Virus record (IMG/VR): IMGVR_UViG_3300046167_000825
Span: 124,001 to 188,000 of that record
DNA length: 64,000 nucleotides
Direction: 5' to 3' (one strand)
Under the pieces are notes generated by a model that searched no databases, was not told the origin of the DNA, and worked only from the letters and a program-made list of their open reading frames with translations. Positions within the stretch are counted from its first letter, which is position 1. Each line of letters starts with the position of its first letter. A program made the position numbers and the translations under genes. Below, in pieces: positions 32,846 to 59,879 of this stretch.

Positions 32846-32846
32846 C

Positions 32847-38813: not shown

Positions 38814-38824
38814 AATCACAAAAT

Positions 38825-38929: not shown

Positions 38930-38960
38930 TGCGGTTGCATATATAAAGGAGATCCGTATA
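38930..38960 (+). promoter_or_regulatory. Class-I phage promoter motif
   Basis: TGCGGTTG-N16-CCGTATA. Confidence 0.8.
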
Positions 38961-39004
38961 GAGATTAGTCAATCAATCAAATCATTATTCAAGGAGAATA
39001 AATC

Positions 39005-40339: not shown

Positions 40340-40454
40340 TCGGCTCGGCTCTCGGAGGGGGGGATTTCCCTCCCCTATCGCTTCTGGGGGTAGTCAAGAA
40401 TCTACATGACTACCCTCGATAGTTCCTATATCCACTGCTCTTTATAAGGATGAT

Positions 40455-40485
40455 TGCGGTTGCATATATAAAAGAGATCCGTATA
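40455..40485 (+). promoter_or_regulatory. Class-I phage promoter motif
   Basis: TGCGGTTG-N16-CCGTATA; near-identical to the 38930 cassette. Confidence 0.8.
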
Positions 40486-40527
40486 GGGATTAGTCAATCA
40501 ATCAATATATTCATAGGAGAATAAATC

Positions 40528-43871: not shown

Positions 43872-44333
43872 ATGTCAGATTTACGAGGCAACCTTATTCG
43901 TTTAGCACACGCCAACCCAGAACTCCGAAAGGACTTGATACCCTTGTTGAAGCAAGCCAACCCGATAAGACATTGGAAACTTAAGAAAGGTGTTGCACAC
44001 ATTAGATATCGGATAGAGTCTGGTGGCAAGCGACTCCTAGTGCTGATCTCTTATCGTGGTAATAAAGATAGAGTGCTGATAAGTGATTTGGCACAAGAAC
44101 TGACATACGTTGAAAATGAAGCCAAAGGAACGGCTAAAACTCTGAGTAGTCTGATGTCACAAGGTAGTTTGGGTCTTCAGACCTTCTCAATGGACAGTGT
44201 CGAGGCAGAGTTCGACAGCAAGTATCCAATCTTGGTAAGACACTCCTCCTACTATGAGATTTTTGACGGTAAAGAAGAAACCGTCAGAGGGATGATGGAG
44301 AACCTCATGGGTGCTTCCGAATTGAAAAGGTAG
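43872..44333 (+). CDS. Hypothetical protein with an N-terminal LIRLAHANPELRKDLIPLL tag
   Basis: GGAG SD; tag shared with the 48846 and 56034 ORFs. Confidence 0.7.
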   Translation: MSDLRGNLIRLAHANPELRKDLIPLLKQANPIRHWKLKKGVAHIRYRIESGGKRLLVLISYRGNKDRVLISDLAQELTYVENEAKGTAKTLSSLMSQGSLGLQTFSMDSVEAEFDSKYPILVRHSSYYEIFDGKEETVRGMMENLMGASELKR

Positions 44334-44482
44334 AAAGCACTGGGTTTTTCAAAACGCATTTGCGAATTAGTGATCCGTGAAATTGTTCTGGTAATTTTTT
44401 TTGGGGGGTTGGTTTTGACCCCCCTTTGGTATTCTGTCTATATTGTATAGAAAGGTGAAGCATTATAAGGGGTATTGAAAAC

Positions 44483-45139
44483 ATGAAAGATGTTGAACTA
44501 TGGCATGGGGATTGTCTAAAATTGATGAAAGACATTGAAGACAATAGTGTTGATTTGTGTCTCACGGACATACCGTACGATGTTGTCAATAGATCCAGCA
44601 ATGGCTTGAGATCCCTTGATAAAGGTACGGCAGATATTTTAACCTTTGATTTGACTGACTTTTTAGACGAGGTCACAAGAATAAGCAAGACGGTCATTAT
44701 CTTTTGTGGTAAAGAGCAATTCTCTACAATTTATGCCTACTATGCCTCTAAAAAAGGGACAACTAGACCTATTGTATGGCAAAAATCAAATCCATCCCCT
44801 ATGAACGGTCAATATGTATATTTATCGGGGATTGAAATGGCAGTGTGGTTTAAGTCAAAAAAATCAAAAACATTTAATGCCCACTGTAAAAACACAGTAT
44901 TCAAGCATCCAAATGGCAGAAATAAACTACACCCAACAGAGAAAAATCATAGGTTACTAGAAGAATTAATACTTGATAACACCAATGAGGGCGATCTTGT
45001 GCTCGATCCGTGTGGTGGTAGTTTCTCGACTGGGATTGCTTGTCTAAAAATCAAGCGTAGATTTAGGGGTATAGAAAAAGACCCAATGTATTTCGAGATA
45101 GCAAAGAAACGCATTGAAGAACATCAAAAAACAATTTAA
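44483..45139 (+). CDS. Orphan N6A/N4C DNA methyltransferase (beta class)
   Basis: GDCL...VDLCLTDIPY...HPTEK...VLDPCGGS..TG...GIE; more AT-rich than its neighbours. Confidence 0.88.
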   Translation: MKDVELWHGDCLKLMKDIEDNSVDLCLTDIPYDVVNRSSNGLRSLDKGTADILTFDLTDFLDEVTRISKTVIIFCGKEQFSTIYAYYASKKGTTRPIVWQKSNPSPMNGQYVYLSGIEMAVWFKSKKSKTFNAHCKNTVFKHPNGRNKLHPTEKNHRLLEELILDNTNEGDLVLDPCGGSFSTGIACLKIKRRFRGIEKDPMYFEIAKKRIEEHQKTI

Positions 45140-45150
45140 GGGGTATTGAA

Positions 45151-45792
45151 ATGAAGAAACTATCAAAAGAAGCGACACTTCGGTTGTTGTTACAAGGTAT
45201 GTACAAGGGTTTACAAGATGCAAAGAACGACCCATTGGTACAAGCGAAGTATCCTCGTGGGTTATCCTTCATTGAGGGGATGGTTGTAGATTTGGGTAAG
45301 AAGGCAGCCCGTGACCCCAACTTCAAATTGAGTGAGAAGCAAGTGAAGAAACTCAATCAGTTCTTGGGTGGTAGTTCGGGAGTCTTGAGTTCTGTTCTCC
45401 GTAGGCACATTGTCCGTCATTGTAATGGCAATGAGTGTACGATGGTATCCCCCAATGAGTTTCGTTTTGAGTATGTCAAGCCGACCTTTCACGTTACGGG
45501 TGAGTTGCGAGTTGGTGGTACATACAAAGAAGACACTTATCAGATAGACAGCACGGTAGAGACCTTATCGGAGGTGTTAGCCCAGTATGCCATTTCAATG
45601 AAGGGTTATCGTAGAGGTATGACAGAGTATTCCTTTGAGAATGGTGTCATCAAGATGGAGTCAATGCACCGTAATCGTGCAGATATTTTTGATGTCAATG
45701 AAAAGACATCGGAACTAGAGTTATTTATCAACGGCAAGCCTTTAGCGAAAGCATTGGGTGAGCAAGCCATTAAGTATTTCCAAAGGAGTTAA
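45151..45792 (+). CDS. Hypothetical protein
   Basis: Clean ORF; starts MKKLSKEA. Confidence 0.6.
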   Translation: MKKLSKEATLRLLLQGMYKGLQDAKNDPLVQAKYPRGLSFIEGMVVDLGKKAARDPNFKLSEKQVKKLNQFLGGSSGVLSSVLRRHIVRHCNGNECTMVSPNEFRFEYVKPTFHVTGELRVGGTYKEDTYQIDSTVETLSEVLAQYAISMKGYRRGMTEYSFENGVIKMESMHRNRADIFDVNEKTSELELFINGKPLAKALGEQAIKYFQRS

Positions 45793-45794
45793 TC

Positions 45795-46160
45795 ATGAAA
45801 TGGACAATAACGGGAAGATATCAATCTGGATCGAAGAACATTATATCGGGCAACATGGGTCGGTGGTCAGTACAATCCGACACGGCTTTCAGTATTGAGG
45901 TATCTCGGTTCTCTGAGGTATTCCATCAACAGAAATACCCCATGATGCCTATACCTTCTGGTCGTGGTACAGACACAGTGGGTTATCGTATGTCGAAAGA
46001 CAAGACTGGCATCGTGATGGATCAAGTTCATCATCATTCCACGAAGCCCGTCAAGATGATTTTCCGTAGAGCAATCCACGAGTTGAAGATCAACGGTGCA
46101 GCACCTTCAAGAGAGATGTTGGAGAAAACCGTGAAGTACCTAGAACGTAAGTTCAAATGA
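45795..46160 (+). CDS. Hypothetical protein
   Basis: AAGGAG SD; C-terminus resembles that of the upstream ORF (EL.ING......L.E..(I/V)KY). Confidence 0.6.
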   Translation: MKWTITGRYQSGSKNIISGNMGRWSVQSDTAFSIEVSRFSEVFHQQKYPMMPIPSGRGTDTVGYRMSKDKTGIVMDQVHHHSTKPVKMIFRRAIHELKINGAAPSREMLEKTVKYLERKFK

Positions 46161-46957
46161 AGAAATTAGCGAAGGCTATGGTTATCCCCGTTCGTCAGAG
46201 AACGCAATACACTTGCGTTCCTTGTTCTTTGTCTATGTGCTTGAAGGCATTGGGTATGGAGTGGATGACGGAGGACATCGTCAATGACGTGATGGGTGCT
46301 AGACCGATGAAGGGTGCTACTTGGGAAGCCGTCATCAATGCCGCCCAGCATTTCGGTAAGCGTGCAACTCTCACTGCTCCTTGTACAATCGAGCAAATGA
46401 AGGAATGGACTGACCAAGGGTTACCGATAATGATTGCTTGGAATCCAGAGGGTCGAGAGTGGAGTCACGCTTCCACTGTGTTCCATGTTTGTGAGGAATA
46501 TGTTTGGGTGGCTGACCCGAACATCCCCGACCCCAATGAAGTGGTTAGGAAAGTGCCTCACAAAGATTTTTATTCCAAGTGGTACGAGAAGCACACGAAC
46601 TATCTAGTTCGGAGACCCGCTGTTGTGATATCCCACGAGATATCTGAATCTGGCATGCAAGTGCCGTATCCCAATATGAGGATGGCGAAAACGGCTGGAA
46701 GTGATTACATGTCCAAGCAGAACATTCGAGATTCTTTGCGTATGTGCCAAGAGTTAGTTCTGTGGGTTGACGGTGAGAACATGGAGGACTGGGTGGAGGA
46801 CAAGTTGTCGGTCATTCGTGCAGCACTCTCAGATGTCCATCGTTTCTACACCAATGGTAAGTGGGATATCGGGAAAGAGAAGATCACTCTTTGGCGAGAA
46901 GCCAGCAGTGTCGGGAGAGTTTCAGATCGTTATCAAGCACGAGTTGAGGACAGTTGA
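46157..46957 (+). CDS. Papain-like C39-family cysteine peptidase plus a C-terminal helical module
   Basis: Q.TQYTC (Gln, catalytic Cys)...WSHAS (His)...VWVADP (Asp). Confidence 0.78.
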   Translation: MKKLAKAMVIPVRQRTQYTCVPCSLSMCLKALGMEWMTEDIVNDVMGARPMKGATWEAVINAAQHFGKRATLTAPCTIEQMKEWTDQGLPIMIAWNPEGREWSHASTVFHVCEEYVWVADPNIPDPNEVVRKVPHKDFYSKWYEKHTNYLVRRPAVVISHEISESGMQVPYPNMRMAKTAGSDYMSKQNIRDSLRMCQELVLWVDGENMEDWVEDKLSVIRAALSDVHRFYTNGKWDIGKEKITLWREASSVGRVSDRYQARVEDS

Positions 46958-47247
46958 TTTGGTTCGTGCTATTCGATATTTCATATCGGAACTTAGTTGA
47001 AGACACCCAATGTTTTTATGTAACGACACCCGAACTAGAGGGGTTGTCGGAAGCAGAGAAGGATTGGGTGTTTTTTCATACGCTTGGTATTGAGTTCGGT
47101 TGGGTATTATCTTCGTGGGACAAGGAATCCAGAACTATTTTTTTGGATGATGGTCGAGAAATCTTTATGTTGGATTATTGGGAGGAGAACCCTTCCCATA
47201 AGCCCCACACAAGATTATTGAACAATACACTATGGCACAACAAATAG
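46954..47247 (+). CDS. Hypothetical protein
   Basis: TTGA overlap; fills the operon gap. Confidence 0.45.
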   Translation: MIWFVLFDISYRNLVEDTQCFYVTTPELEGLSEAEKDWVFFHTLGIEFGWVLSSWDKESRTIFLDDGREIFMLDYWEENPSHKPHTRLLNNTLWHNK

Positions 47248-47257
47248 GAGAATAACA

Positions 47258-48796
47258 ATGTCGAAAGAGATATATTTTGGGGAAGACTTCCGAACTCAAA
47301 TACTGAAGGGTGCTGACATATTTGCGAACACCGTGACCAAGACAATGGGGCCATTTAGTGGCACAGTCATGATGAATCGAATGGGGGGTTTGCTCCAAAC
47401 GAAAGATGGTGTGACGGTCGCCCGTGAGATCAATCTGAAGAACCCCGTAGCGAATATGGGTTGTCAAGTGTTGAAGGAGGCTTGTATCAAGGTCAATGAC
47501 GAGGCTGGTGATGGCACGACCACCACTGCTTGTTTGACCAACGCCATTTTGAGAGAGGGGCATAAGATGATCACGGCTGGGTTTGACCCCATGACTCTCC
47601 AAAGGGAACTCCGTCAAGCGAGTGATAAAGTTATCAAGACCTTGTGGGATAATGCCTTCCCCGTTGAGGAGGAATCCGAACTTCATTCAGTTGCAATGAT
47701 TTCTTGTAACGGTGACCGAGAGGTAGCCGATGTCTTAACTGAGGCTTGTCTTGCTGTCGGTAAAGATGGGACAGTGGTTATCGAAGAAGGGAAGGGCATT
47801 GGTATCGAGATGGATTTCAAGGAGGGCTTTGAGTTATCTTGTGGGGCAGTGAGTCGTCATTTTATGGACAACGCCCTTGAGAAGAAGTTGATTTCCCCTT
47901 TGGTTGCGATTGTTCCGAAAGTGATTACATCCATGAAGGATGTCCATTCGATGCTTGAAGAATCTTCCCAGTTCCCCCAGAATGAGTTGTTGTTAATTTG
48001 TTATGGGTTGGAAGGGGAAGCCTTGAAGTTTATGGCGACCAATCATGTGAAGGGTGTTTGTACATCAATGCCCATCAATATCGCTGGGGTATCTCTGAGG
48101 AGAGCCGAGTACATGAAGGACTTGGCGGCTCTTTGTGGTTGTGAAGTTTTAGAGGTGGATCAGTATGACATCACGAAGTTCAATACGGACTGGTTTGGGT
48201 CTTGCTTGGAGGTTCTTGTCCAAGAGAAGAAAACCATCTTCTCGGCTTTCGATGAAGCCGAAACCTCCATCGAAAGGAGAGTCAACGAACTCCAAACAGA
48301 TATGGCGAGTTCGATTTCAGATTACGACCGAGATGACATCACAAAAAGAATATCCAAACTGAAGGGTGGTTTCTGTTTGGTTTCAGTTGGTGGTCACACC
48401 GAACTGGCTATGAAAGAGAAACGTGCTCGGATTGAGGATGCACTTGGTGCTGTTCAGAGTGCTTTGAAAACTGGGATAGTCGCTGGTGGTGGGGCTTCTT
48501 ATCTTTGGGCATCTCAAGTTCTGAGTGACGATGGTGGTGAAGGTATTCTTAAACGGGCTTTAAGGAAACCAATGGAAACGATAGTGGGCAATGCTCGGCA
48601 GAACGGTGACTTCGCTGTGGAGATTCTGCTCCGTGATGGTGAACATGCTTGGCACGGGTGGGATGTCCGTAAGAAAAAGGTGATTGATCTTTATAAGACA
48701 AAGATTATTGACCCTCTCCTCGTGGCAGAGAAAGCCGTTGAGAGTTCGGTTTCTGTTGCTGGATTGATGATTACTGCTGAGGCTGGTATCGTTTGA
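47258..48796 (+). CDS. groEL: Phage chaperonin, GroEL/Cpn60-like
   Basis: TKDGVTVAREI, AGDGTTT, KEKRARIEDAL...GIVAGGG, IIDP; no GGM tail. Confidence 0.92.
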   Translation: MSKEIYFGEDFRTQILKGADIFANTVTKTMGPFSGTVMMNRMGGLLQTKDGVTVAREINLKNPVANMGCQVLKEACIKVNDEAGDGTTTTACLTNAILREGHKMITAGFDPMTLQRELRQASDKVIKTLWDNAFPVEEESELHSVAMISCNGDREVADVLTEACLAVGKDGTVVIEEGKGIGIEMDFKEGFELSCGAVSRHFMDNALEKKLISPLVAIVPKVITSMKDVHSMLEESSQFPQNELLLICYGLEGEALKFMATNHVKGVCTSMPINIAGVSLRRAEYMKDLAALCGCEVLEVDQYDITKFNTDWFGSCLEVLVQEKKTIFSAFDEAETSIERRVNELQTDMASSISDYDRDDITKRISKLKGGFCLVSVGGHTELAMKEKRARIEDALGAVQSALKTGIVAGGGASYLWASQVLSDDGGEGILKRALRKPMETIVGNARQNGDFAVEILLRDGEHAWHGWDVRKKKVIDLYKTKIIDPLLVAEKAVESSVSVAGLMITAEAGIV

Positions 48797-48845
48797 TAAT
48801 CTATTTATATTCTCATTTGAGAGAAAGACTTATATTGGAGTGATT

Positions 48846-50066
48846 ATGAAGATTGATAGAAAAATGGAAATAGGTGGGAAGCCCTTCAAGATATATGATC
48901 AAGAGAATGATGGGGTCACTACTTTATGGAGTTCCAATGGACAGCGTAATTTTCCTCAGATGAGTCGTGAGAAAAAACTCATTGCAGAGGATATTTTTGG
49001 TCTTCTAACCTTCCGTTATACTTGGGGTGGTTTTGGGGATTTGACTCTCCGAGAGCAACTTGAGAATAAGTTCGATTCTTTTTGGTACAACGCTAAGGCG
49101 AATCGTTATTGGTTTCAGTTTTTGTTTCCTTTAATGGAAGGACAACCCCAGTTGAAGAATCTTGTTGCTGAAAAACTCCAGTTGGATTTCACGGGTGTTT
49201 CTCGTCTCAAGGTTCGGGATAGTGATTCCGAGTCCATTGCAAAGGCGATATGGGAAGCGAGAAAAATGCGAGATATCTATGAACCATTCAAGGATGCTTT
49301 CTTCTCTCAGAGAGGCACGGCTCTTCTGCCCGAACAAGAGGGTTCTTCTTTAGAGAAGGGAACTATCGTTATTGCCATGAAGTTGAACGAGGGTCAAGGA
49401 GCGAGTTTTGCTGGAGTTCGGGTCTTCAGTGATGACAGTCGTGGTTTGAAAAGTGCTATCCAGAAAGAAGCGACTAAGTTGTATCGTGGTTTCATTGCAC
49501 CTCACACAAGTATCTTCGAGAACCGTATGAGAGATGAGTACATGAAGGGTGGATACACCGTTTATGACTCGGAAGGCTACAATGAATTGATGGCAGCCGA
49601 ACTAGAAGCAATGATACCAACTTTGTTCGGGGGTAATGTCTCCATCCGTTCAGCCAGTTCGGGGGATTCTTTAAGAAACAAAGTCATTCGTCTTGCTCAC
49701 AGTAATCCAGAACTCCGAAAGGATTTGTTACCTCTCTTGAAAGAAGCACGCTTACACGACAAGGCTCTCGCTCTCCGAATCCAAAACTCAAAGGCTGGTA
49801 AGGCGTACGGTCTTTACTTTGCCGCTGGGTTCAAGTCTAATCGTGCAGATAGCGATGGAGCGATCACTTACGAGTTTGAAACCAACATACAAAACGGCAA
49901 CTTCAAAGAGGTCATCTATATAGATGTGACCAAATGGGATAGCGGTGACGAGATGTACAGCGTTCAAGCCAAGTACGGTAAAGGAACTTGGGATCACAGA
50001 TCAGAGAAAGACCTCTTGAAAAACCTCCCTAGTATTCTAGCCAACCTCGAAAAACAACTCGGCTAA
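48846..50066 (+). CDS. Modular hypothetical protein with an internal VIRLAHSNPELRKDLLPLL tag
   Basis: GGAG SD; tag flanked by RSA and KEA. Confidence 0.7.
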   Translation: MKIDRKMEIGGKPFKIYDQENDGVTTLWSSNGQRNFPQMSREKKLIAEDIFGLLTFRYTWGGFGDLTLREQLENKFDSFWYNAKANRYWFQFLFPLMEGQPQLKNLVAEKLQLDFTGVSRLKVRDSDSESIAKAIWEARKMRDIYEPFKDAFFSQRGTALLPEQEGSSLEKGTIVIAMKLNEGQGASFAGVRVFSDDSRGLKSAIQKEATKLYRGFIAPHTSIFENRMRDEYMKGGYTVYDSEGYNELMAAELEAMIPTLFGGNVSIRSASSGDSLRNKVIRLAHSNPELRKDLLPLLKEARLHDKALALRIQNSKAGKAYGLYFAAGFKSNRADSDGAITYEFETNIQNGNFKEVIYIDVTKWDSGDEMYSVQAKYGKGTWDHRSEKDLLKNLPSILANLEKQLG

Positions 50067-50138
50067 GAGTATGTGATCCCGTAAGGGAACATTCTCGGTC
50101 TTCCGAACTAAATCAAGCCCAATTGTTCCTTAACGGGA

Positions 50139-50261
50139 TCATTGGGCTTTTTTGTTAAGCACAAACCCGAAGATGAATCCAGTGCAGAAGGACAATATGG
50201 AAGCGAGTCCTATGGTGGGATAAAGTTCAATCACACACATTGTGTATTCGATGGCGTTCAT
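50139..50261 (-). CDS. 40-aa single-TM protein (not in the ORF track)
   Basis: MNAIEYTMCVIELYPTIGLASILSFCTGFIFGFVLNKKAQ; AGGAG SD directly after the upstream stop. Confidence 0.5.
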   Translation of the reverse strand: MNAIEYTMCVIELYPTIGLASILSFCTGFIFGFVLNKKAQ

Positions 50262-50270
50262 AAGAAACTC

Positions 50271-51200
50271 CTAGTATTCGTAGGCGATTTCCACGAGGGC
50301 ATCACCGTTGGGGGTTACATCAAACACCACGACATTCCGAGAACTGTCATAGTGCCAATCACTTGATGGCTGACCATCAATAAAAACAAAGATTCCTTGC
50401 TCACCATAATAGGGGACATTTGTCAGTTCCCATTCACTATACGGTTGTATCTGTTGGAGAGCATCTTGGACAGAGGGTGTCCAATCATCACTACATATAT
50501 CAACCACAATGCCATTCAAAAGGTTTGTGGCTTCCATGTATCTATCCCCGATGTCGGGTTCACAATCGGTGGTGGATACCACGATAGATGCTAGAAAGAC
50601 AGTATTACGGATACCCGAATACCACTGAACGAAATCAGATGCTTGAGAGAACATATTCGTGGATTGGTCATCTTCGTCAGACACAAAAATAACGAGGAGG
50701 GAGGCTTCATGTCGCATCCAGTTCTGAGCATACGAACCCGTGTAATAAGAATAGAAAGCCTTGAAGCCTTCTTCCCTATGACCCCCCGTGTTTTGGAGCA
50801 TGGTTATGGCATCTATTTCTGTGTCCCCAAACAACAAGGGGAACTGCTGTTCATTTGCAGCATAATTACTATCGGCTGATATTATAGCAACTCGCCACAT
50901 AGCATCCCACGAGGCATTGAGATCCGTCAACATCGCTTGGAATCCCAATTCTAACTTGGTTTGATTATTGCTCATCGAACCCGAACGGTCAACCACCCAC
51001 ACAATATCGACACCCGAACTAGAACTAGGTTGGGTGAAACTATCCACCCAGATGTCATCTGCTGCTGTGTCCTCAACGGGAACTTCGACAATGACCTCAA
51101 CTGGATTGGAAGTGTCTTCAAGATATACATACTCAATGATCACTTTCTCGTAGCCCAACGAATAGTCGGAACACGCCCACAAAAACAAAAAACCCCACAC
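50271..51200 (-). CDS. vWA-domain lipoprotein
   Basis: LWA-C lipobox; VDIVWVVDRSGSM MIDAS; LLVIFVSDEDDQS; G.RY...DICS.DW. Confidence 0.75.
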   Translation of the reverse strand: MWGFLFLWACSDYSLGYEKVIIEYVYLEDTSNPVEVIVEVPVEDTAADDIWVDSFTQPSSSSGVDIVWVVDRSGSMSNNQTKLELGFQAMLTDLNASWDAMWRVAIISADSNYAANEQQFPLLFGDTEIDAITMLQNTGGHREEGFKAFYSYYTGSYAQNWMRHEASLLVIFVSDEDDQSTNMFSQASDFVQWYSGIRNTVFLASIVVSTTDCEPDIGDRYMEATNLLNGIVVDICSDDWTPSVQDALQQIQPYSEWELTNVPYYGEQGIFVFIDGQPSSDWHYDSSRNVVVFDVTPNGDALVEIAYEY

Positions 51201-51381
51201 GATTCCCCCATCACCTCCAAAGAGGTCAACTTGGTTAAAAAAATCGCATAGAGTTCAGATACAAAAAGACGAGGTTCGCCCATACTTATTTGTTTGTGGT
51301 ATGGATTGATTATTGAAGGTTGTCCCAGAATATCTTAAAAAAGTGTTCCCATTCTTGATCCTCAAGAATATCTTGCTGTCC

Positions 51382-51699
51382 TCAGCCGAACTTATCGATC
51401 CCCGTTTTATCCATATGACGGGAAGCGACACGGAACTCAATGGGGGGTTCGTGTGAGGATAGCACCAACCATTCTTCGTAGAGGGATTCTTCCAAGAAGG
51501 CTTTCAGTTCTTCGGTGGCTGTATCCATCAAGGCTAGTTCGTCACCTTCGAGATACTCCCACACTTCATCTATATCGACAATGCCCGATGAGTAATCATT
51601 CTCTAGTGTTTCGGATGGGTCACGACCATTAGTCCAAACCAAGAGTGCCTTTGACACCTCTGCTTCCCACTTTATCCGATGTTCTTCTGGTATTGACAT
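51382..51699 (-). CDS. Acidic hypothetical protein ending in FRVASRHM
   Basis: AAGGAG SD. Confidence 0.6.
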   Translation of the reverse strand: MSIPEEHRIKWEAEVSKALLVWTNGRDPSETLENDYSSGIVDIDEVWEYLEGDELALMDTATEELKAFLEESLYEEWLVLSSHEPPIEFRVASRHMDKTGIDKFG

Positions 51700-51876
51700 A
51701 GAGACTCCTTTCTTCTTCGGTATCTTATTAAAGAACTATTGCACCAAAAAAATAGGGGGCTAGAACACCAGCCCCCTAGAAATCAACATCAAATCAACAT
51801 CATATACCATAAGGAATACTGATAAGATACATCATAATTCTGAAAATGGTTCAACAATAATTGAGGGAAAAACAAG

Positions 51877-52212
51877 ATGTCAGATACAACCCCACAAAAG
51901 AGTGTCGAAATAAATTGGGAAGCCTCTGTGAAAGTCTTAATCGAGATGGTGCAGCATGAAGATTCTTGGTTTTCTAAGCACCAACCCTTAACGAATGAAG
52001 ATTATCAACAACTGTTGGCACTGCCTTCTGGAGGAATGACTCAAGTTTCCCACACCTTGTTGATGGAGGCTATAAAGAGGGAGGTCTATCTTTCTTTCTA
52101 TGCCCTCAAATCAAAAGAGGACTTGGAGGGGAGGGTTTATCAAGTGATGTCCGAAATCTTGAAGAGAGAGATACCCCGTGTGGTTGAGAACCTCAAGTTA
52201 GAGGGGTTGTAA
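51877..52212 (+). CDS. Hypothetical protein
   Basis: GAGG SD; clean ORF. Confidence 0.55.
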   Translation: MSDTTPQKSVEINWEASVKVLIEMVQHEDSWFSKHQPLTNEDYQQLLALPSGGMTQVSHTLLMEAIKREVYLSFYALKSKEDLEGRVYQVMSEILKREIPRVVENLKLEGL

Positions 52213-52232
52213 GGCAACCCCTTTTTCGTATA
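52202..52232 (+). promoter_or_regulatory. Variant class-I promoter motif
   Basis: AGGGGTTG-N16-TCGTATA. Confidence 0.5.
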
Positions 52233-52261
52233 GAACACACACACAAATAAAGGAGAGCAAA

Positions 52262-52447
52262 ATGTTCTACAAAATCAATGACTGGAAAAACTTTTTATTG
52301 GATTATCTCTCAGATAGACGGAAAAAGTTGAACACCGAATCGAAGCAGTTTACAAATATCGAAGAAGCCTACCGTGCTGGTTTTCTACGAGGGTTCTGGG
52401 AAGGGGCTGGTGAATCTTTCGGACACACTGAAAAGAGAGTGACCTAA
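52262..52447 (+). CDS. Small hypothetical protein
   Basis: AAGGAG SD. Confidence 0.55.
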   Translation: MFYKINDWKNFLLDYLSDRRKKLNTESKQFTNIEEAYRAGFLRGFWEGAGESFGHTEKRVT

Positions 52448-52695
52448 TGGCTCGTAAAACTGAGTGCCTAACACCAAACTGCCAATTCCACATAGGAATA
52501 AACTCAAAAGGGATCTCTGTGCAAGTAGATTTCCCAAAGCCAATTCACTTTTCAAGAAAAGAAGCAAAGTTAATTGAGGACTTATTACACAATAGTGTAG
52601 AAACTGTCTTGCGACCTTATTTCAAACAACAAAGGAAATCAAAAAGGTCACTTATCACACAATGGATTTTTAAGTTGGTGGCAAATGGCTCGTAA
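52447..52695 (+). CDS. Small hypothetical protein
   Basis: TAATG coupling. Confidence 0.55.
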   Translation: MARKTECLTPNCQFHIGINSKGISVQVDFPKPIHFSRKEAKLIEDLLHNSVETVLRPYFKQQRKSKRSLITQWIFKLVANGS

Positions 52696-53257
52696 AGTCT
52701 GGAAACGAAAGAAAGGTGCTGACCTCAATGAAAAACTCAGTGATGAACATCAAATCACAAACAAACAGTTTGAATGTTATTTCCGTGACTTGGAAACACA
52801 CCTCATTGAGTTCATAGAAGCCTCTGAGAGCGTTGTCTGTTGCGTGGCTTGGCTTACCTCACAGAAAGTCATCAAAGCCCTTCTTGAGAAACCTAGTGTT
52901 CTTATATTACGGAATGAGAGTTGGCTCAATAAGAAGGGGGGTCTCGCCAAGAAAACCCGTGAGATGTATGGGAAAATGAGAGCCAGTAAAAAAACCTTCC
53001 CAGTTATGGGTGAAACCATAGAAGAAGATATACTGGTTTGTGGGATGATATCCCACCCACAGAACATGCACCACAAGTTCGTGATTCGTTTGGAGAAGGG
53101 GAAACCTATTGCCTTGTGGAATGGTTCTTTCAATCCCACCACGAATGGGAATCAATCCATAGAGAACGCAACGGTGATACACAATCCGACCGTAGCGAAA
53201 GCCTATGCCTCAGAGTTTCTGGCGGTACATGGTATCAGCAAACCCTTGAAGGTCTAG
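52685..53257 (+). CDS. Phospholipase D-like (HKD family) nuclease
   Basis: CVAWLT...MHHKFVI...W.GSFNPT.NG..S.ENA; the Asp of HxKxxxxD is not in register. Confidence 0.75.
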   Translation: MARKVWKRKKGADLNEKLSDEHQITNKQFECYFRDLETHLIEFIEASESVVCCVAWLTSQKVIKALLEKPSVLILRNESWLNKKGGLAKKTREMYGKMRASKKTFPVMGETIEEDILVCGMISHPQNMHHKFVIRLEKGKPIALWNGSFNPTTNGNQSIENATVIHNPTVAKAYASEFLAVHGISKPLKV

Positions 53258-53541
53258 GATTTCTTCAGAGGTGTTCCTACAGCCCCTTTGATACGCCCGT
53301 ACTTATCTTCTTTGGTTCTCCAGTCCTTCGCTAGTTCTTCATCGGTCTGTTGGATGGTCACCATCACCATAATGCCTTTACCCCCAACTCGGCAATACTC
53401 CCGACCACCGTCAATGTAACCCCCCTTGCGAGGTTCTTTGTTCTCCTCCCAACAGACGCAGCAAGCGAAGGCATGCCTAGTTCGACTGAAATAGGTCACA
53501 TCACATTCGGGGCAATATCTCCCTAGTACTTCTCTCTCCAT
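53254..53541 (-). CDS. Cys-rich hypothetical protein
   Basis: CPEC...SRTRH.F.CC.C...IDGGREY.R phage motif. Confidence 0.65.
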   Translation of the reverse strand: MEREVLGRYCPECDVTYFSRTRHAFACCVCWEENKEPRKGGYIDGGREYCRVGGKGIMVMVTIQQTDEELAKDWRTKEDKYGRIKGAVGTPLKKS

Positions 53542-53666
53542 TATTCACCTCTTGGGAGAGTGATATCGTGTATCCATTCTGCCCGTTGATTCATTCCGAG
53601 CAAATAGAAGATTTCCATTAAAGGATGCCCGATTATATTATGTATTGTATATCTAAATCTTCTCAT
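53541..53666 (-). CDS. 41-aa phage protein (not in the ORF track)
   Basis: MRRFRYTIHNIIGHPLMEIFYLLGMNQRAEWIHDITLPRGE; translationally coupled on both sides. Confidence 0.55.
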   Translation of the reverse strand: MRRFRYTIHNIIGHPLMEIFYLLGMNQRAEWIHDITLPRGE

Positions 53667-53824
53667 TTTTTCTTTCCCTTCTGAGATACACGGAACTTTT
53701 CATAGAGTTCGACTCCCATTGCTTTTCTGAGATGAGATTCAAAATCTTCTCCTTTCGGCTGAGGGGCTTGGTATTTCTTCTTTGGTTTTTCTTCCAACCA
53801 CGAACTACCTCTTTCTATCTTCAT
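53663..53824 (-). CDS. 53-aa basic protein (not in the ORF track)
   Basis: AAGGAG SD; ATGA overlap with the next gene. Confidence 0.5.
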   Translation of the reverse strand: MKIERGSSWLEEKPKKKYQAPQPKGEDFESHLRKAMGVELYEKFRVSQKGKKK

Positions 53825-53907
53825 GGGTCTTCTCCTTTTGAACCAATATACCCCTTCAATAATCTTTCAATAGATTCGTATCAATGATAAACCTATAAGA
53901 GAATTAT

Positions 53908-56034
53908 ATGAAAACTTTTGAGTTATATGGTGATGTGTATCCAGAGGACAGCAAGTACTCTCGTTTGATGGCTCAGTACATAATGACACCGAACTACGAT
54001 TCCGACTCAAAAAAAGAGTGGGAACTGTATAGGGATTTCGCAGTCAAAAAACGAATGGGCGACAACGAGATGAAAGCGTTCTTGGTCGCCAAAGATTCTA
54101 GCCATCACAATATGATTCTCGGAAGACCTCCTAGAGATTCTCGTGACTTAGAACAAGTGTATTCTCGCCAGTTCGGAAAGAGTGCTTCTTCACGGGAAGA
54201 CGAAAAGGAACTGACGGAAATCTTTCGTTTGTTGCAGAGAAGGTTCGGTCAAGCGAGGCGTTGGCATGAGTCTGGTTTTGAGGATCAGTATTTCCACATT
54301 GACAACGGCATAATGTTCTTCGCATATACCACGGGGCTTCGTGGTGAAGATGCCGACAACTCTGATTTGGAAGGTGGAATCCGTAGAGATAACAAAGACG
54401 ATGTCCAACAGTTCTTGGAGAGAAAAGGGTACGAGTTTATCCTAGAATGTGCCAACGCATATTGCGACACTTTAATGTTGACCTTGAAAGGGAAAGAGTG
54501 GATGAAGAACAATCGACCACGATACGCCAAACAAGCAGAGGATGAGTGTTCGGGGATGACCAACACAATGGATTATGTTCATTGCCGAGCAAAGAAGATG
54601 GAAAAAGAAAATGGCACATCAGCCGACAAAGCGTTTCCGACAGCGTGGTCTATTGCTTGTAAATACAAGCGTGACCAGTTGAGCGATGCCGATGAACATT
54701 GTCAGAAAAAACCTAATGAATATTTCAAATCTAAAAAAGCAAATGGAGAACCCATGAAAAAGAAAGCGGCTAGAGTGCCTCAAATCCTAATTGAAACGAT
54801 AATGCCAGCCTTGTACCAATGGAGGGTTGACAAACTTTCTCGTGATCTTCGTAGTGATCTCAAAGAACTCGCCATAGGTGACATGATGGAAGAACTTGTT
54901 GTGAAAGATCACTATGATGAGTTGTTTGCACTCAAAGATAACTCAGAGGCTATGGCTTGGATTGGAGTAGATTCTAAGACCTACAAGAAAGCCATCATGC
55001 AAACTTTGATTGCTGCTCGTCAGATGAAGTTGGGTTCTTCCGAACTAGAACTTATGGCTGGACACACCCCAGAGTCCTTCAAGAAAATGATGAAAGACAA
55101 TCCCGAACTAGCCGAAGAATGGGAGAAGCAAATCAAAGAGAACGAAGGTGTTGTCGAGAAGAAATCTTCTGAAGCAGATATCGTTGCCAATTTGGTTGAG
55201 AAATGGGCTGGTTGTGAGAAACTCCCTAACGAGAAGATGCAGCAAATGTGCGAGGATAAGAAAGAAGAATCCAAGAAGGAAGACAAAGAGGATGGGGAAG
55301 ACAAGAAAGACAAGAAAGCCCATGACAAAACAGCCCGTCTGATGAAGCGACAGATCAAGATTCTTGAGACCTATCTTCGCACCCAAACTTCTATCCCTAT
55401 GTTTTTTGAGGCTCTTCCTCCGAAAATCCAACAAGCATTACAGCGAGTCAAGTACCAAGAAACTCTTGAGATGGATGTTGAGAGATGGTTGTCTGATTAC
55501 CGATTGGAGCAACAAATAAATCAAAACCGTTGGGCATCTAATGGCTCTACGAAGGAGAACCCCATGAACAAAGAAGCAAAAACTGCTTTGAGAACCCTTA
55601 CTGCTAGTTGGGGACTCACAGCCGATGAAACCTACGAGATGTTAGCCGAAGACGAACTAGGGGAGTACCTTGCCGAAATGGAAGCCGAAATGTGGGCTGA
55701 AGAAATGGAAGCGGGTGCATCAAAGAACCCAGCGAACGCTGGTTTCAAAAAGTATCAAATACAGAAGAAGCCCTCTGAGCCTTATTACCGAGAGAAATGG
55801 TGGAAGCCCAACACTTCTAACGAAGACAAAGGTGGGAACGGTGCTGGTGGTACTGCCAACTTCAATCGCAACTACCACGAGTATGGTGAGAAGGCTAATG
55901 TGAGCGAGAAGGAGTACCAAAAGTCCTATTACCAAAAACGCTTTGTGGAAAACAAGCCCATCAAGCGTAAGACTTGCCCTAAGTTTCATGGGAGAAAGGG
56001 GCCTTGTGATGAATCCGTAAGTAAGGCAAAGTAA
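53908..56034 (+). CDS. Modular polyprotein-like hypothetical protein (putative head-internal protein)
   Basis: Many K/R-x-A-delimited segments; two internal SD+ATG starts. Confidence 0.7.
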   Translation: MKTFELYGDVYPEDSKYSRLMAQYIMTPNYDSDSKKEWELYRDFAVKKRMGDNEMKAFLVAKDSSHHNMILGRPPRDSRDLEQVYSRQFGKSASSREDEKELTEIFRLLQRRFGQARRWHESGFEDQYFHIDNGIMFFAYTTGLRGEDADNSDLEGGIRRDNKDDVQQFLERKGYEFILECANAYCDTLMLTLKGKEWMKNNRPRYAKQAEDECSGMTNTMDYVHCRAKKMEKENGTSADKAFPTAWSIACKYKRDQLSDADEHCQKKPNEYFKSKKANGEPMKKKAARVPQILIETIMPALYQWRVDKLSRDLRSDLKELAIGDMMEELVVKDHYDELFALKDNSEAMAWIGVDSKTYKKAIMQTLIAARQMKLGSSELELMAGHTPESFKKMMKDNPELAEEWEKQIKENEGVVEKKSSEADIVANLVEKWAGCEKLPNEKMQQMCEDKKEESKKEDKEDGEDKKDKKAHDKTARLMKRQIKILETYLRTQTSIPMFFEALPPKIQQALQRVKYQETLEMDVERWLSDYRLEQQINQNRWASNGSTKENPMNKEAKTALRTLTASWGLTADETYEMLAEDELGEYLAEMEAEMWAEEMEAGASKNPANAGFKKYQIQKKPSEPYYREKWWKPNTSNEDKGGNGAGGTANFNRNYHEYGEKANVSEKEYQKSYYQKRFVENKPIKRKTCPKFHGRKGPCDESVSKAK

Positions 56035-56669
56035 TGAAGCGAGTTCGTCTTACACAAGTATGGCAAAAAGATATCACTGCTAGTTCGGGTCTTTATGGCT
56101 CGACTAAAGCAGTCGATAACTCTGTGCAAGCCAGTATCCGAAAGATACAACGCAAAGCCTCGAAGGTGGCTAAGGCTCTTTATAAGAGAGACCCCAAGTC
56201 ATCTGAGTTCCTTGCTATGCACGCCAAGAAAAGCAAATCGGCTTCTGCTCAGATTCTTGTTAATGCCATCAAGGAACTTGCTCCCAAGTTCGCAACCGAG
56301 ATGAACAAACAAGCCTCTTGGGGGATGTACGGATATCCTAAAAAGACAGTCACTCGTTCGTTGGGTGCTTGTGCTGAGATGAAGGATTTCGCTGGCTCTG
56401 TGGCTAGTGACCTCCATCGTAGGAAGCATGACAAGTATGATGCTTTGTTGTCCTACTTGAAATCCCATAAGAAGGAAACGAAGTGTCCTTGTACTTCAGC
56501 CCTTCTGAACTATTACCCTTCAAAAGAAATGCGTTTCGCTTCTGAAGAAGAACCCACTCTCCGTGAGTCTTTGATTCGATTGGCAAATGAAAAACCCCAT
56601 CTCCGAACTCATCTGAGTTCATTGATAGGGGAAGCACCGAACTGGCTTTATTGGTCAGACTGGGATTAA
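56034..56669 (+). CDS. Two-repeat helical protein with a C-terminal LIRLANEKPHLR tag
   Basis: Repeats start with GLYG and GMYG; TAATG coupling. Confidence 0.7.
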   Translation: MKRVRLTQVWQKDITASSGLYGSTKAVDNSVQASIRKIQRKASKVAKALYKRDPKSSEFLAMHAKKSKSASAQILVNAIKELAPKFATEMNKQASWGMYGYPKKTVTRSLGACAEMKDFAGSVASDLHRRKHDKYDALLSYLKSHKKETKCPCTSALLNYYPSKEMRFASEEEPTLRESLIRLANEKPHLRTHLSSLIGEAPNWLYWSDWD

Positions 56670-57112
56670 GTTCTCTTCCGTATGGGTTGCTTGACCAAAC
56701 GAACGGTTGCTTTTTTTTGTCGTTGTTCGACATTATTAAAGAGTGCCGTTTTTTGGCGTTCGGGTAGCCCCACAAGGGTTTCCTCAAACTTGGGTGTCGT
56801 CTGCAACTTGGCGTAGAACAATACATTGAACATTGAGCCGAGTTCTCGCTGGAGTGCTAGAAGGTCAGCATCTGATTTCAGAACCCAATTGGACTTGGAC
56901 TCAATCACATGGAAGTGTGCTGTGTCCGACACGGGCACTCGGCTCTCCTCATAGCCTCGTAGTTCGTCTTTGTATGTGTCGAGTATGGTCTTGATGCTAG
57001 ACTGGGCTTCCCACAAAGTATAGGCTATTTCCGAGCGTTCTCTGGTGGGTGTGTCATCCCATTGTTCTTGTATGGTGTTTATTAGTTGTTTGAGTATTCT
57101 GAGTTCTTGCAT
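56666..57112 (-). CDS. Hypothetical protein
   Basis: AAGGA SD. Confidence 0.6.
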   Translation of the reverse strand: MQELRILKQLINTIQEQWDDTPTRERSEIAYTLWEAQSSIKTILDTYKDELRGYEESRVPVSDTAHFHVIESKSNWVLKSDADLLALQRELGSMFNVLFYAKLQTTPKFEETLVGLPERQKTALFNNVEQRQKKATVRLVKQPIRKRT

Positions 57113-57195
57113 AGTCTGTTCCTTTGAGATTAAAGAATCTAGTTAAGTGTTTGAAGAACACCCCCTCAAAGTGAGGGGGGCTTACGGCTCTCGGC

Positions 57196-58089
57196 TTAGG
57201 AGAGGAGGTGGTACGGGATGCTCTCTCGGAAAACACGAGGTGTCGTTGGGAGGTCAGCGAAAACCCGACCAATATTCGTAATGTCACCGTTGCGATCAAT
57301 TATTTTCTTCCCTTGCATCAAGAGCATAAGTTGTGGGTCGGCATTGGGAACACGACCACCACCAATTAAAATCTTGAGGATTCCAAGACAGTCACGGTGA
57401 ATACTCGCCCAGTGGTCGATAGCAAGCCGAGCAACAACCATTTTCTCACGAGCGTTCCCCCGATTGATACCGAGTTCTTGGGCTAACTCCGTACTCGTCC
57501 AGCCGAATATTTCGGCTACGACAGCCTCTTTAGCATAAGGGATGGGCTTACCCCGTTTTTTGAAGAGGGCAGTCATCTCACCCATCAGTTCAAAGAGGGC
57601 TTCATGTTCCACTGGGTCAATCTCATCGGCTCTCTCTTCTATAGAAGAAGGGGTGGCTACTACAATAGTGGTAGCCTCTTCAACACCGACTGAACCCTCG
57701 TAGGCTTCACTGAGTGCCGAAGGTGGGGTTGCGTAGAACTTGACCATCTGACGGTCATCATCATTGGTGACTGCCCATTGCTGTGCTACATCCACATTGT
57801 GACGGATGTTCTTGTCAAGGCTGTCCAACATCGCATTAAATGCGAAGAGTGCAAGACGAGAGGCTGTGATTTCCTTGCCTTTGATTTCAACCACATCTCC
57901 GTTTTCATCTGTCGTTAAACGACACGCTAGTCTATCGGAGGAGGCAGCAACAAGATAGTAATCGTGAAGGATATCCGCTAGGTCTATCTTCCGAAAGTTG
58001 TGCTTCACTTTGACTTGAAGCCAATCGAGCGTGGATTTGTAGAGGGAGGAAAAGTTGGCTTGTAGCCATGTAGTAGACAAATTAGTCAT
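57196..58089 (-). CDS. Divergent sigma-like/HTH transcription factor
   Basis: DLADILHD...FAFNAMLDSL (region-2-like); GWTSTELAQELGINRGNAREKM..AR (region-4-like HTH). Confidence 0.5.
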   Translation of the reverse strand: MTNLSTTWLQANFSSLYKSTLDWLQVKVKHNFRKIDLADILHDYYLVAASSDRLACRLTTDENGDVVEIKGKEITASRLALFAFNAMLDSLDKNIRHNVDVAQQWAVTNDDDRQMVKFYATPPSALSEAYEGSVGVEEATTIVVATPSSIEERADEIDPVEHEALFELMGEMTALFKKRGKPIPYAKEAVVAEIFGWTSTELAQELGINRGNAREKMVVARLAIDHWASIHRDCLGILKILIGGGRVPNADPQLMLLMQGKKIIDRNGDITNIGRVFADLPTTPRVFRESIPYHLLS

Positions 58090-58228
58090 AGGGCGAGTAC
58101 CTTATTTTATGGGTTAGGGGTGACCGTAGTCAGAGAGATAAACGAGTACATTATCCAAAAGAGGACAATGATTTTTAATAATTCACACAAAGCGTAGTTG
58201 TGCTACTAGACTTAGTATAGCATATTTA

Positions 58229-58259
58229 CATACGGGTCACAAGCAAAAACGCAACCGCA
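58229..58259 (-). promoter_or_regulatory. Class-I phage promoter motif
   Basis: TGCGGTTG-N16-CCGTATG. Confidence 0.75.
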
Positions 58260-58358
58260 GAGCGTTATGGACAGATTTTGACCTCTCTCGAGAAAAGATT
58301 TGAACTCAATAATTCGTTTATCTTTGGTAGATTATGAAAAGCCTTATTGGAGATAACA

Positions 58359-59879
58359 ATGCGTACAATTAAAAAGATAGCGATGAACCGACAGATGAAG
58401 TTTCAAATGATCAATGACTTTGCAAAGTCTGTTGGTGTGATGGACTTAAGTCAATATGGCGATACTGCTGTGGGTATTTACAATGATCTTGTGACGGCTA
58501 TGTACTCCGTGATGGATGTGAAGGTACTTGAAAAAGATGACCTTGAGCAGATGTTAAATCTCTATCTCGCTGGGATAAACCCTTCGTCTTACTGGTCTGA
58601 GGGTAAATTGAAGCAGAGCCTTAGTGATGATAATGTCGATAAAGCCCAAGCGTTCTTGTCGGCTTTCTCTGACCGATCCACGGCTGTGTGGGCTTCCTTG
58701 TGGGGGTCACGGGATGCGTCATCCATAAAGGACATCAAAACAACTTTCGCTCAAATGAAGACAAGTCTCCGACAAAGAGCCAGAGATGAAATCCGACAAG
58801 AAAATGCCCGCCAAGAGGGCATGGTTCAAATGGATAATAGTGGTGACGACAGTGATTCAGCACAAGCCTACCAAAACGCAATGGAGGGGGAAATCTCTCG
58901 TTCGGTCGGTGTTGGGCAGACTTTCAACTTGAACTCTTGGGATGAGATCCAAGCCGCTGGGAATCGGGATGAGAAAGTGGGGCAAGCAGTGGCAGACATT
59001 GAGGCACTATTCTCAAGCAATATTTCCCAGATTGCTTTGGCTGTAATGGATATTGCTTTTGTAGGGGATAGAAAAACAGATGCTTTTGAGAGAAAACTTT
59101 TTGAAATAGCGAACTCCGTTGGTGATTACTCCGTAAAGGTCACGACATTGTTTGGGGATATAAACATCGATCAGAATATCACTATCGGTCGCCCCGTAGC
59201 CTTGAAGTCTAAGAACTGGCTAACCAATCTCACAGCCCATCTCGTTGTGACAAGATATCCCGCACTACGCTATTTGGTAGTTCCAGACAAGAAGGTCAAG
59301 AATCTTCCCGAAGGTGATTTCCGTGACCTACTAGACGGGAAACACACTCGACCCTTTTCAAACGCTTCTATTTCTCTGCCACAACACTTGAGTATCTCTG
59401 CAAGGGATATTGCTAGAAACTCAGATGCTCAAACCATCGTTGGTCGGTTCGACCCTTCTTCTGCTGATATTGAGAGTAAAGATGGTGTGATAGCAATGAC
59501 AAACAAGTCTTTCATAAAACTCATGAAAGCCGCTAGAGAGTCTTTGAACCAAAAATGGGTTTCTGGGAAAAGGTTGAGAAACAAGCCTTTCTGGAAAAAA
59601 GGAATGGATTGTCTTGTTCGTCAAGTTCAGATTGACTTTGAAACAGACCCTACCACATGGCTTGATTATGTAGAACTCCCGAGTAGTGTTTCAGCCGAAA
59701 CAAAAAGGTTCGTAGAAAACTTCCGTTTTTTACTAATCCGTGCGTTGGTTGACCTTGATGAAGCACACGGTTGGTACGAACTACGCAATAAGAGATTCGC
59801 TAAAAAGAAAGAAGCCAAACAACATCGTCTGGCTTCCAAAGTCGCTTACAAATGGTTGCTGAAACAATCTAAAGCATAA
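58359..59879 (+). CDS. Hypothetical protein (possible virion-packaged factor)
   Basis: GGAG SD; N-terminal KKIA; C-terminal RFA/KEA and RLASKVAYKWL. Confidence 0.65.
   Translation: MRTIKKIAMNRQMKFQMINDFAKSVGVMDLSQYGDTAVGIYNDLVTAMYSVMDVKVLEKDDLEQMLNLYLAGINPSSYWSEGKLKQSLSDDNVDKAQAFLSAFSDRSTAVWASLWGSRDASSIKDIKTTFAQMKTSLRQRARDEIRQENARQEGMVQMDNSGDDSDSAQAYQNAMEGEISRSVGVGQTFNLNSWDEIQAAGNRDEKVGQAVADIEALFSSNISQIALAVMDIAFVGDRKTDAFERKLFEIANSVGDYSVKVTTLFGDINIDQNITIGRPVALKSKNWLTNLTAHLVVTRYPALRYLVVPDKKVKNLPEGDFRDLLDGKHTRPFSNASISLPQHLSISARDIARNSDAQTIVGRFDPSSADIESKDGVIAMTNKSFIKLMKAARESLNQKWVSGKRLRNKPFWKKGMDCLVRQVQIDFETDPTTWLDYVELPSSVSAETKRFVENFRFLLIRALVDLDEAHGWYELRNKRFAKKKEAKQHRLASKVAYKWLLKQSKA

Follow-up and report, generated by a model that had tools for sequence, protein, structure and literature searches.

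Capsid targeting peptides and head-protease consensus sites are already known. The capsid targeting sequence (CTS) of phage T4 is about 10 amino acids (aa) long, strictly N-terminal, and cut after Glu (L/I-x-E) by gp21. Here, we describe a different peptide module, referred to as tag 1, which is carried by three proteins encoded in a 64,000-nucleotide stretch (the window) of the 289-kb IMG/VR contig IMGVR_UViG_3300046167_000825; window position 1 corresponds to approximately position 124,001 of the contig. The T4 CTS is a short conserved peptide on unrelated non-essential proteins (IPII, IPIII, and Alt), is followed by the head-protease consensus, and suffices to bring foreign proteins into the head (PMC9958956, PMC5512222). 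Like the CTS, tag 1 is one conserved peptide on several unrelated proteins of one phage, with three copies in the window and 11 in the uncultured huge phage LR745208.1 (LR745208). Unlike the CTS, it is a two-helix hairpin of 26-28 aa that occurs at any position and in multiple copies, with K/R-x-A on both sides. A further difference from T4 is that homologues of gp20-gp24 (among them the gp21-like protease, the gp22 scaffold, and the gp23 capsid protein) were not found in the window or in LR745208.

In phiKZ, SPN3US, and 201phi2-1, many proteins including ejection proteins are loaded into the head, and N-terminal or internal propeptides are removed at a short consensus by gp175/gp245 (PMC5694885, PMC10052503). 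The propeptide consensus in this group is S/A/G-x-E, whereas the tag boundary described here is an Ala with Lys or Arg two residues before it, and the propeptides are not known to be one common sequence module. Phages of the phiKZ type rely on their own RNA polymerases; the sigma factor encoded in the window thus points away from such a lifestyle. In phage P1, an N-terminal stretch of DarB of more than 9 and at most 30 residues suffices to direct a reporter to the head; DarB itself, the natural cargo, acts against restriction (PMC9024508). Unlike tag 1, the DarB signal is known on one protein and has no described flanking consensus; no sequence similarity between the two was detected.

The C-terminal helix-turn-helix of the P22 scaffolding protein is small and basic, binds the coat protein from the inside, and takes cargo that is fused to it along into the procapsid. 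It is like tag 1 in shape but is found in one scaffold protein, does not occur naturally on many cargos, and is not proteolysed; a profile search of the PDB gave no match. Encapsulin and microcompartment peptides are short, portable, and amphipathic, lie at the N- or C-terminus (in microcompartments also between domains), are joined by flexible linkers, and address unrelated enzymes into a shell. These peptides are cellular, belong to other sequence families, and are not excised, whereas tag 1 is nearly absent from cellular genomes. Polyvalent proteins carry 2-15 effector domains per polypeptide and are predicted to be packaged and delivered, with peptidase domains proposed to release parts (Iyer et al. 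2017; PMC5512222). The proteins bearing tag 1 resemble them in overlapping domain families (ART-PolyVal twice, ParBc_2, and others) but mostly have a single body, with many encoded in tandem arrays, and their common feature is a peptide tag rather than a giant fusion. Finally, herpesvirus assemblin cuts between Ala and Ser, and Prp of S. aureus, a cysteine protease, cuts after Phe-Ala in capsid and scaffold proteins of phage 80alpha. Both set a precedent, by analogy, for cutting after an Ala that stands before a small residue during head maturation, although Lys/Arg at P3 is not in their consensus. Judged from Pfam, PHROGs, PDB, and the searchable literature, what is new here is the module, its position independence, the double K/R-x-A edges, and the scale.

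A portable two-helix tag on unrelated proteins

An initial annotation of the window had proposed that the same tag lies at the N-terminus of the protein starting at 43872, within that starting at 48846, and at the C-terminus of that starting at 56034, and it is found in exactly these places. A hidden Markov model (HMM) built from the three window copies and a few relatives was scored on the 1,471 six-frame open reading frames (ORFs) of the window. The three copies reached 58-68 bits and the next best ORF 7.5 bits, so that the window holds exactly three copies and chance is excluded. The six-frame translation likewise contains three copies of the consensus LRxx[LIV]IRLA[HN]xxPxLRxxLxxL and no more: one N-terminal, one internal, and one C-terminal. 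The copies and their bearers are the following:

43872-43958, + strand: N-terminal copy of tag 1, MSDLRGNLIRLAHANPELRKDLIPLLKQA; 68.2 bits; ends K-Q-A
43872-44333, + strand: 153-aa tagged protein, tag plus alpha/beta body whose fold was not recognised
49647-49748, + strand: internal copy of tag 1, RSASSGDSLRNKVIRLAHSNPELRKDLLPLLKEA; 62.2 bits; R-S-A-S upstream and K-E-A downstream
48846 (48840)-50066, + strand: 406/408-aa protein with N-domain, R-x-A-S, tag, and exchangeable C-terminal body
56532-56636, + strand: C-terminal copy of tag 1, more divergent, RFASEEEPTLRESLIRLANEKPHLRTHLSSLIGEA; 57.8 bits; R-F-A-S before it
56034-56669, + strand: 211-aa protein with the tag near its C-terminus

Outside the tag, no similarity was detected among the three proteins, and none has a Pfam or PHROG family. 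When AlphaFold models of the 43872 and 48846 proteins were compared with the PDB, no similar fold was found. Within the 56034 protein, the body has two 'SGLYG' repeats, which start x-A-S-(S)GLYG, and four [KR]xAS sites, one of them followed by the tag-2-like string KVAKALY (tag 2 is described below). Its homologue in LR745208 (474365-472962) is tagless and adds two copies of a 40-aa repeat ending EMAKKA. The N-terminal tag is kept in the homologues P0001-P0007 of the 43872 protein, two of which have insertions between tag and body.

Tag 1 comprises 26-28 residues that form a small, basic, amphipathic two-helix hairpin, LRSKLIRLAH-xNP-ELRxxLLPLLK, with R2, R7, R16, P13, and P21 being nearly invariant. 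In the AlphaFold (AF2) model of the 43872 protein, helices span residues 3-14 and 16-29 and are followed by a low-confidence linker and a separate body.

The tag is widespread among uncultured viruses. A degenerate scan of IMG/VR yielded 61 loci on approximately 35 large viral contigs of up to 485 kb, with 97 distinct tag copies; tandem arrays of tagged genes were frequent, and a single protein sometimes carried two or three copies. A profile derived from 91 copies was searched against 1.84 billion representative proteins. At E<=1e-3 it detected 4,327 protein clusters, of which 1,032 also passed E<=1e-10; single proteins carried as many as seven copies. All clusters that were looked up were metagenomic and unnamed. 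In these searches the module is restricted to viruses: when the genomes of 185,579 bacterial and archaeal species were scanned with two DNA patterns, one scan gave no match and the other a single one. The sole cellular match (L072:1559-1804) is an 81-aa ORF with an N-terminal tag on the 25.9-kb contig CAZEFW010000138.1 of a Myxococcales metagenome-assembled genome, where it adjoins a GC-rich, bacterial-looking gene. The contig may stem from a phage and have been binned wrongly, or it may point to the host. Among GenBank phages, the only record bearing the tag is the complete 485-kb genome LR745208.1, in which 11 tagged ORFs, 10 of them with N-terminal tags, are spread across the genome. No Pfam or PHROGs family and no PDB chain covers the tag itself, and nothing on the motif was found in the searchable literature. 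Whatever its destination, the module is in any case a new family.

The position independence claimed at the outset is borne out on the larger scale. When the tag was masked, 88 tagged proteins fell into 66 body clusters, 53 of which were singletons. The 150 best database proteins contained 349 copies, of which 119 were N-terminal, 176 internal, and 54 C-terminal. Tag 1 is thus portable and not bound to one position, and the proteins that carry it are unrelated. Where it is C-terminal, the protein stops right behind LLPLLK, which means that the tag must act in these proteins before any removal.

Selection acts on the peptide. Within LR745208, tag copies are 78% identical in amino acids, yet the same codon is used at only 46% of identical residues; the window copies give the same value of 46%, and the nucleotide identity of tags is 59-71%. 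A DNA or RNA element, a DNA-level repeat, and recent duplication were excluded as sources of the likeness by these randomised synonymous sites. Tags are slightly but significantly more similar within a genome (0.68) than between genomes (0.63; 0 of 1000 permutations), as expected of a shared, co-evolving partner.

K/R-x-A edges and tag-body cassettes

The initial annotation had described K/R-x-A as a boundary of tags and domains alike, and for the tag edges this holds, more strongly in relatives than in the window itself. The pattern [KRH]xA was present at most 9 aa upstream of 16 of the 21 internal or C-terminal tags, compared with 8.1% of background windows (p=5e-14). In 150 database representatives, K/R-x-A occurred upstream in 157 of 230 cases, mostly as K-x-A-S-LR, and downstream in 219 of 295 cases, as LLPLL(x)K-x-A. 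Taking all ranges together, it precedes 68-76% of non-N-terminal tags and follows 74-79% of tags, against a background of 8%. The residue after the Ala is mainly Ser upstream of the tag and Gly or Ala downstream of it. Gene fusion was considered as the origin of the upstream K-x-A and rejected: the in-frame untranslated sequence before N-terminal tags contains [KRH]xA in only 4 of 59 cases, so that the upstream motif is not a by-product of fusion. The same K-x-A also stands before two other short motifs, GCEKLPEG and tag 2.

Both K/R-x-A sites of the 48846 protein lie in predicted flexible linkers. In its AlphaFold model, the confidence score (pLDDT) is below 50 at residues 263-275 and 300-304, which flank the helices 276-286 and 288-298, and these two segments, each with one of the sites, separate the N-domain, the hairpin, and the C-domain. 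Across 12 homologues of this protein, R and A of the R-x-A-S before the tag are invariant.

Proteins are shuffled at the tag. The 12 homologues share an N-domain of approximately 270 aa, R-x-A-S, and the tag, after which at least four unrelated C-terminal bodies follow (alignment A6). Some have further modules added after RKAS or KAAS. In P0170, the body of the window 43872 protein is fused behind the tag of a 48846-family protein. Since homologues have exchanged bodies, insertions between tag and body, or a body with no tag, tag and body behave as a unit that either stands alone or is fused behind other domains. Most tagged proteins have one body; some have two or three bodies joined by tags.

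Most tagged bodies have no family, and a PHROGs search with 132 tagged proteins returned unknown-function families only. The bodies with recognisable domains comprise ART-PolyVal (2), DUF2958 (2), RelA/SpoT (2), DUF7717 (2), an RNA ligase, pentapeptide repeats, WGR, and a ParB-like nuclease (ParBc_2). At locus L083, consecutive tagged genes encode a DUF2958 protein, an ART-PolyVal protein, a protein of no known family, and a doubly tagged pentapeptide protein; this effector array lies directly downstream of homologues of the window proteins encoded at 1728-5039 and 5043-8204. On the minus strand of LR745208.1, a tagged ORF (20756-20286) and an ART-PolyVal ORF (20367-19468) overlap in different frames, unlike in L083 and L028, where tag and ART domain are in a single ORF. 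The overlap within 20756-19468 could reflect a frameshift, an assembly error, or a split gene.

The recognisable cargo domains are of the counter-defence kind, and such types are predicted or known to be packaged into heads and injected. The domain types found here were assigned by Iyer et al. to proteins delivered with the invading DNA (PMC5512222). The ADP-ribosyltransferase Alt of T4 is packaged and injected experimentally (PMC9958956, PMC5512222), and packaging of the P1 Dar proteins is also experimentally established (PMC9024508).

Further motifs, a C39-like peptidase, and the gene surroundings

A second short tag, RV[AS]xR[YFWH] (tag 2), had been reported to end or start other proteins of the window. 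The strings are present where they had been reported, and the strict pattern has three matches in the six-frame translation, all 4-10 aa from the C-terminus of real ORFs; this position is not an independent test, because the pattern was derived from the same cases. Two looser forms end ORFs 58347-59879 and 32188-32850 (- strand). The independent C-terminal excess is weak in other contigs (approximately 5 of 21 versus 19% expected) and absent from LR745208. A third portable motif and the peptidase mentioned below are listed with the tag 2 copies:

46916-46933, + strand: tag 2, RVSDRY; 7 aa from the C-terminus of the peptidase 46157-46957
18460-18477, + strand: tag 2, RVANRF; 4 aa from the C-terminus of ORF 18220-18492
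51415-51432, - strand: tag 2, RVASRH; 10 aa from the C-terminus of ORF 51382-51699 (- strand)
59838-59855, + strand: tag-2-like KVAYKW with R-L-A-S before it; 7 aa from the C-terminus of ORF 58347-59879
16971-16988, - strand: RMAAKL, a weak tag-2-like string near the N-terminus of ORF 16539-17003 (- strand) that fits the loosest pattern only
55201-55251, + strand: third portable motif, K-W-A-GCEKLPNEKMQQMC, in the 708-aa, highly charged protein 53908-56034
46157-46957, + strand: C39-like (papain-fold) thiol peptidase; Pfam Peptidase_C39_2, 1.2e-6; C39, 1.4e-5

Matches to tag 2 usually follow x-A-S, as in KMAS-RVALRH, RLAS-KVAYKW, and REASSVG-RVSDRY. For this reason, and because the C39-like family keeps an xMAS/basic-aromatic tail, we argue that tag 2 is real; it is weaker than tag 1 but recurs on the conserved C39-like peptidase. 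The third motif, [K]xA-GCEKLPEG(G/P)MRDNCEKK, was found in 15 of 178 fetched proteins, usually directly after tag 1. Its fuller form, K-x-A-GCEKLPEG(G/P)MRDNCEKK(K/E)EEG, has two cysteines and is well conserved; bearers include P0009, P0022, P0042, and P0109. It may be a metal or disulphide knuckle.

The peptidase gene sits among the tagged genes of the window, and its family is kept between two distant tag-bearing genomes. The window protein has K-T-A-G after the catalytic domain and the C-terminus R-E-A-S-SVG-RVSDRY. Its match to C39-like models is modest. The LR745208 homologue is 38% identical, with Cys20, His104, and Asp120 conserved, and its gene adjoins the homologue of the 56034 body. 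In distant genomes, the tails of the family consist of xMAS plus a short basic-aromatic stretch (LMAS-KIASKYLR, IMAS-LRKRRF, and MAGT-VARRFLDK). Further entries of the family were seen at L071:33344-33967 (- strand) and in L073-L080. Tag 1 does not have the double-glycine leader of a C39 substrate, which ends in Gly-Gly, Gly-Ala, or Gly-Ser and is N-terminal: the tag ends K-[ETSQ]-A, and Gly before the Ala is rare. The peptidase could be a processing enzyme, or it could itself be cargo.

The initial annotation also held that most of these genes follow a late-type DNA motif, which was not confirmed. The motif TCTTTAAT, which looks like a promoter element, is enriched in the window (8 versus 2.6 expected), but in this region it precedes only 43872, 51382 (- strand), and 56666 (- strand). 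Copies lie at 43840, 51727 (- strand), 57129 (- strand), 30796, and 41988, several of them 17-90 bp upstream of start codons. The start codons of the tagged genes of LR745208.1 have C-rich upstream sequences with no Shine-Dalgarno-like GGAG, whereas GGAG is common in the window. The window phage and LR745208.1 probably infect very different hosts.

Among GenBank phages, the region has no near relative at the DNA level, and the window contains no tRNA genes. Pfam and PHROGs were run on approximately 40 window proteins, nearly all of which were left without a family. Those recognised were GroEL, two DNA methylases, a sigma factor, a holin-like protein, MoxR/VWA-like proteins, and the C39-like peptidase:

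31283-31906: sigma factor
37484-41910: MoxR-type ATPase and VWA/CobT-like partners
47258-48796: GroEL, 34% identity to phage chaperonins

Three very large ORFs, 1728-5039, 5043-8204, and 9897-15215 (1103, 1053, and 1772 aa), had no family match. They are 31-44% identical to counterparts in LR745208 and in contig Ga0395807_0000292, and two of them have a common N-terminal region. These three may be virion proteins. A PDB sequence search with two large conserved window proteins gave nothing useful, and a search of the ESM Atlas gave low-score leads only.

Proposed head loading and the alternatives

We rank first the explanation that tag 1 is a removable address peptide by which accessory proteins are loaded into the head, with processing at K/R-x-A, and give it a probability of about 0.42. 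In this view, uncultured huge phages of one large clade use the hairpin to address or assemble proteins, and it can be attached to various bodies and later removed. Flexible linkers would join it to unrelated bodies, mostly small accessory proteins and among them several enzymes of the counter-defence type, and it would dock these bodies to one common phage partner during head assembly. The docked proteins may then be enclosed in the procapsid and delivered with the DNA. A phage protease would cut after the Ala of [K/R]-x-A where [S/G/A] follows, at both edges, thereby removing the tag and separating fused bodies; the C39-like peptidase is one candidate for this enzyme. Head loading is a reasonable analogy to T4, phiKZ, and P1 that is strengthened by the architecture of the tagged proteins: the peptide is of a size suited to docking, it can sit at either end or inside a protein, and the K/R-x-A motifs stand just where excision would set the bodies free. 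Encapsulation peptides and the P22 helix-turn-helix are the nearest in shape. We hold it at modest confidence, because destination, cleavage, and timing are all inferred. More tentative, and doubtful as a whole, is a fuller version. It holds that a huge-phage clade uses the excisable, position-independent tag and a code of K/R-x-A followed by S/G/A to load dozens of swappable counter-defence effectors into the head for injection, that the enzyme may be the papain-like peptidase with its own short C-terminal address, and that tag-body cassettes are shuffled between genes and genomes.

Several observations weigh against head loading. (i) The K/R-x-A motif is not a general domain-boundary code as initially supposed: over all window genes, [KR]xA occurred 142 times versus 134 expected, and in bodies away from tags, [KR]xA[SGA] occurred 154 times versus 152.5 expected. 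The nine proteins first singled out did contain 16 motifs versus 6.6 expected, an excess explained by their having been picked by eye for that motif. (ii) K/R-x-A may merely be part of a folded module or linker, and a Ser that precedes the first helix caps it well. (iii) Some proteins have three to seven tags in a row with charged spacers, which suits a role in repeats or self-association no less than one in addressing. (iv) Among the roughly 40 window proteins searched with Pfam and PHROGs, none could be identified as a major capsid protein, portal, scaffold, or prohead protease; the only protease found was the C39-like peptidase, and no head or tail family was detected. (v) T4 gp19-gp24, gp27, gp48, and gp54, compared by phmmer with all ORFs of the window (64 kb of the 289-kb contig) and of the complete LR745208, gave nothing below E=0.04. 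(vi) Tagged genes lie amid small genes of mixed orientation, beside the chaperonin and methylases. (vii) The 10 genes of LR745208 with N-terminal tags showed no common upstream motif or promoter. (viii) Among GenBank phage records, no cultured phage has the tag, and consequently there is no virion proteome for tagged proteins. (ix) The C39-like enzyme could equally be a lysin, given that its nearest solved relative, a weak PDB match, is the cell-wall endoisopeptidase PeiR.

Some of these observations would be expected if the tag were a docking or self-association module that acts apart from the virion, binding a hub (a host machine or a phage complex) or other tags, with K/R-x-A as an uncut linker or helix cap. 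This is the main rival, which we consider possible but on balance unlikely. Multi-tag proteins with charged low-complexity spacers (P0009, P0014, P0016, and P0029 with up to seven tags) resemble multivalent scaffolds, and Ser, Thr, Asp, or Asn just before the first helix suits helix capping. The lack of a K/R-x-A excess away from tags and of a tie between tag and head genes points the same way. Capping does not explain, however, why Lys at -4 and Ala at -2 stand upstream of internal tags and are absent from N-terminal copies. The R and A of R-x-A-S do not vary, while the rest of the disordered linker does. Also against this rival, the same K-x-A precedes the unrelated GCEKLPEG motif and tag 2, and the cargo types match packaged effectors.

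It is improbable that tag 1 is a structural unit of HEAT or leucine-rich-repeat-variant (LRV) repeats, with single copies being remnants or solenoid caps in a partner, and no addressing information. The tag is a two-helix unit of approximately 26 aa whose pattern, [IV]R.A...P.L....L, we take to be reminiscent of LRV and HEAT repeats; tandem copies exist, and one tagged protein has a true LRV match. In tag-rich proteins, however, no significant LRV (PF01816, PF25591) or HEAT match was obtained, the best being LRV_2 at E=5.9, and the tag profile finds nothing in the PDB. Moreover, about one-third to two-thirds of the copies are single and lie at the N-terminus with a disordered linker before the body, and tandem copies are unstacked, with long charged spacers between them.

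Still less likely is a regulatory role, in which the tag would be a degron limiting how long accessory proteins last, or a conserved element at the 5' end of the coding sequence that serves translation or recombination. In the IMG/VR loci, most copies are at the very start of genes, and tandem genes with a common 5' end and a variable remainder resemble recombination-driven cassettes. The randomised synonymous sites contradict an element of DNA or RNA. Many copies lie inside the protein or at its very C-terminus, and known bacterial degrons are far smaller than a 26-aa two-helix module with three invariant Arg. Chance or low-complexity similarity is refuted by the bit scores of the window copies (58-68 versus 7.5) and by the 1,032 clusters that passed E<=1e-10 among 1.84 billion proteins.

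If tag 1 is an address label, it marks, from sequence alone, proteins that are delivered or co-assembled by thousands of uncultured huge phages. These proteins mostly lack an assigned function, and several are of the anti-defence type. The label would then open a direct route to new counter-defence proteins. Large capsids could be filled with foreign proteins by means of a natural handle of 26 aa, and head maturation would gain a protease specificity that is new. Should the tag lead elsewhere than to the capsid, it is still an unannotated module that recurs in over 4,000 protein clusters, has a conserved junction motif, and merits definition as a family.

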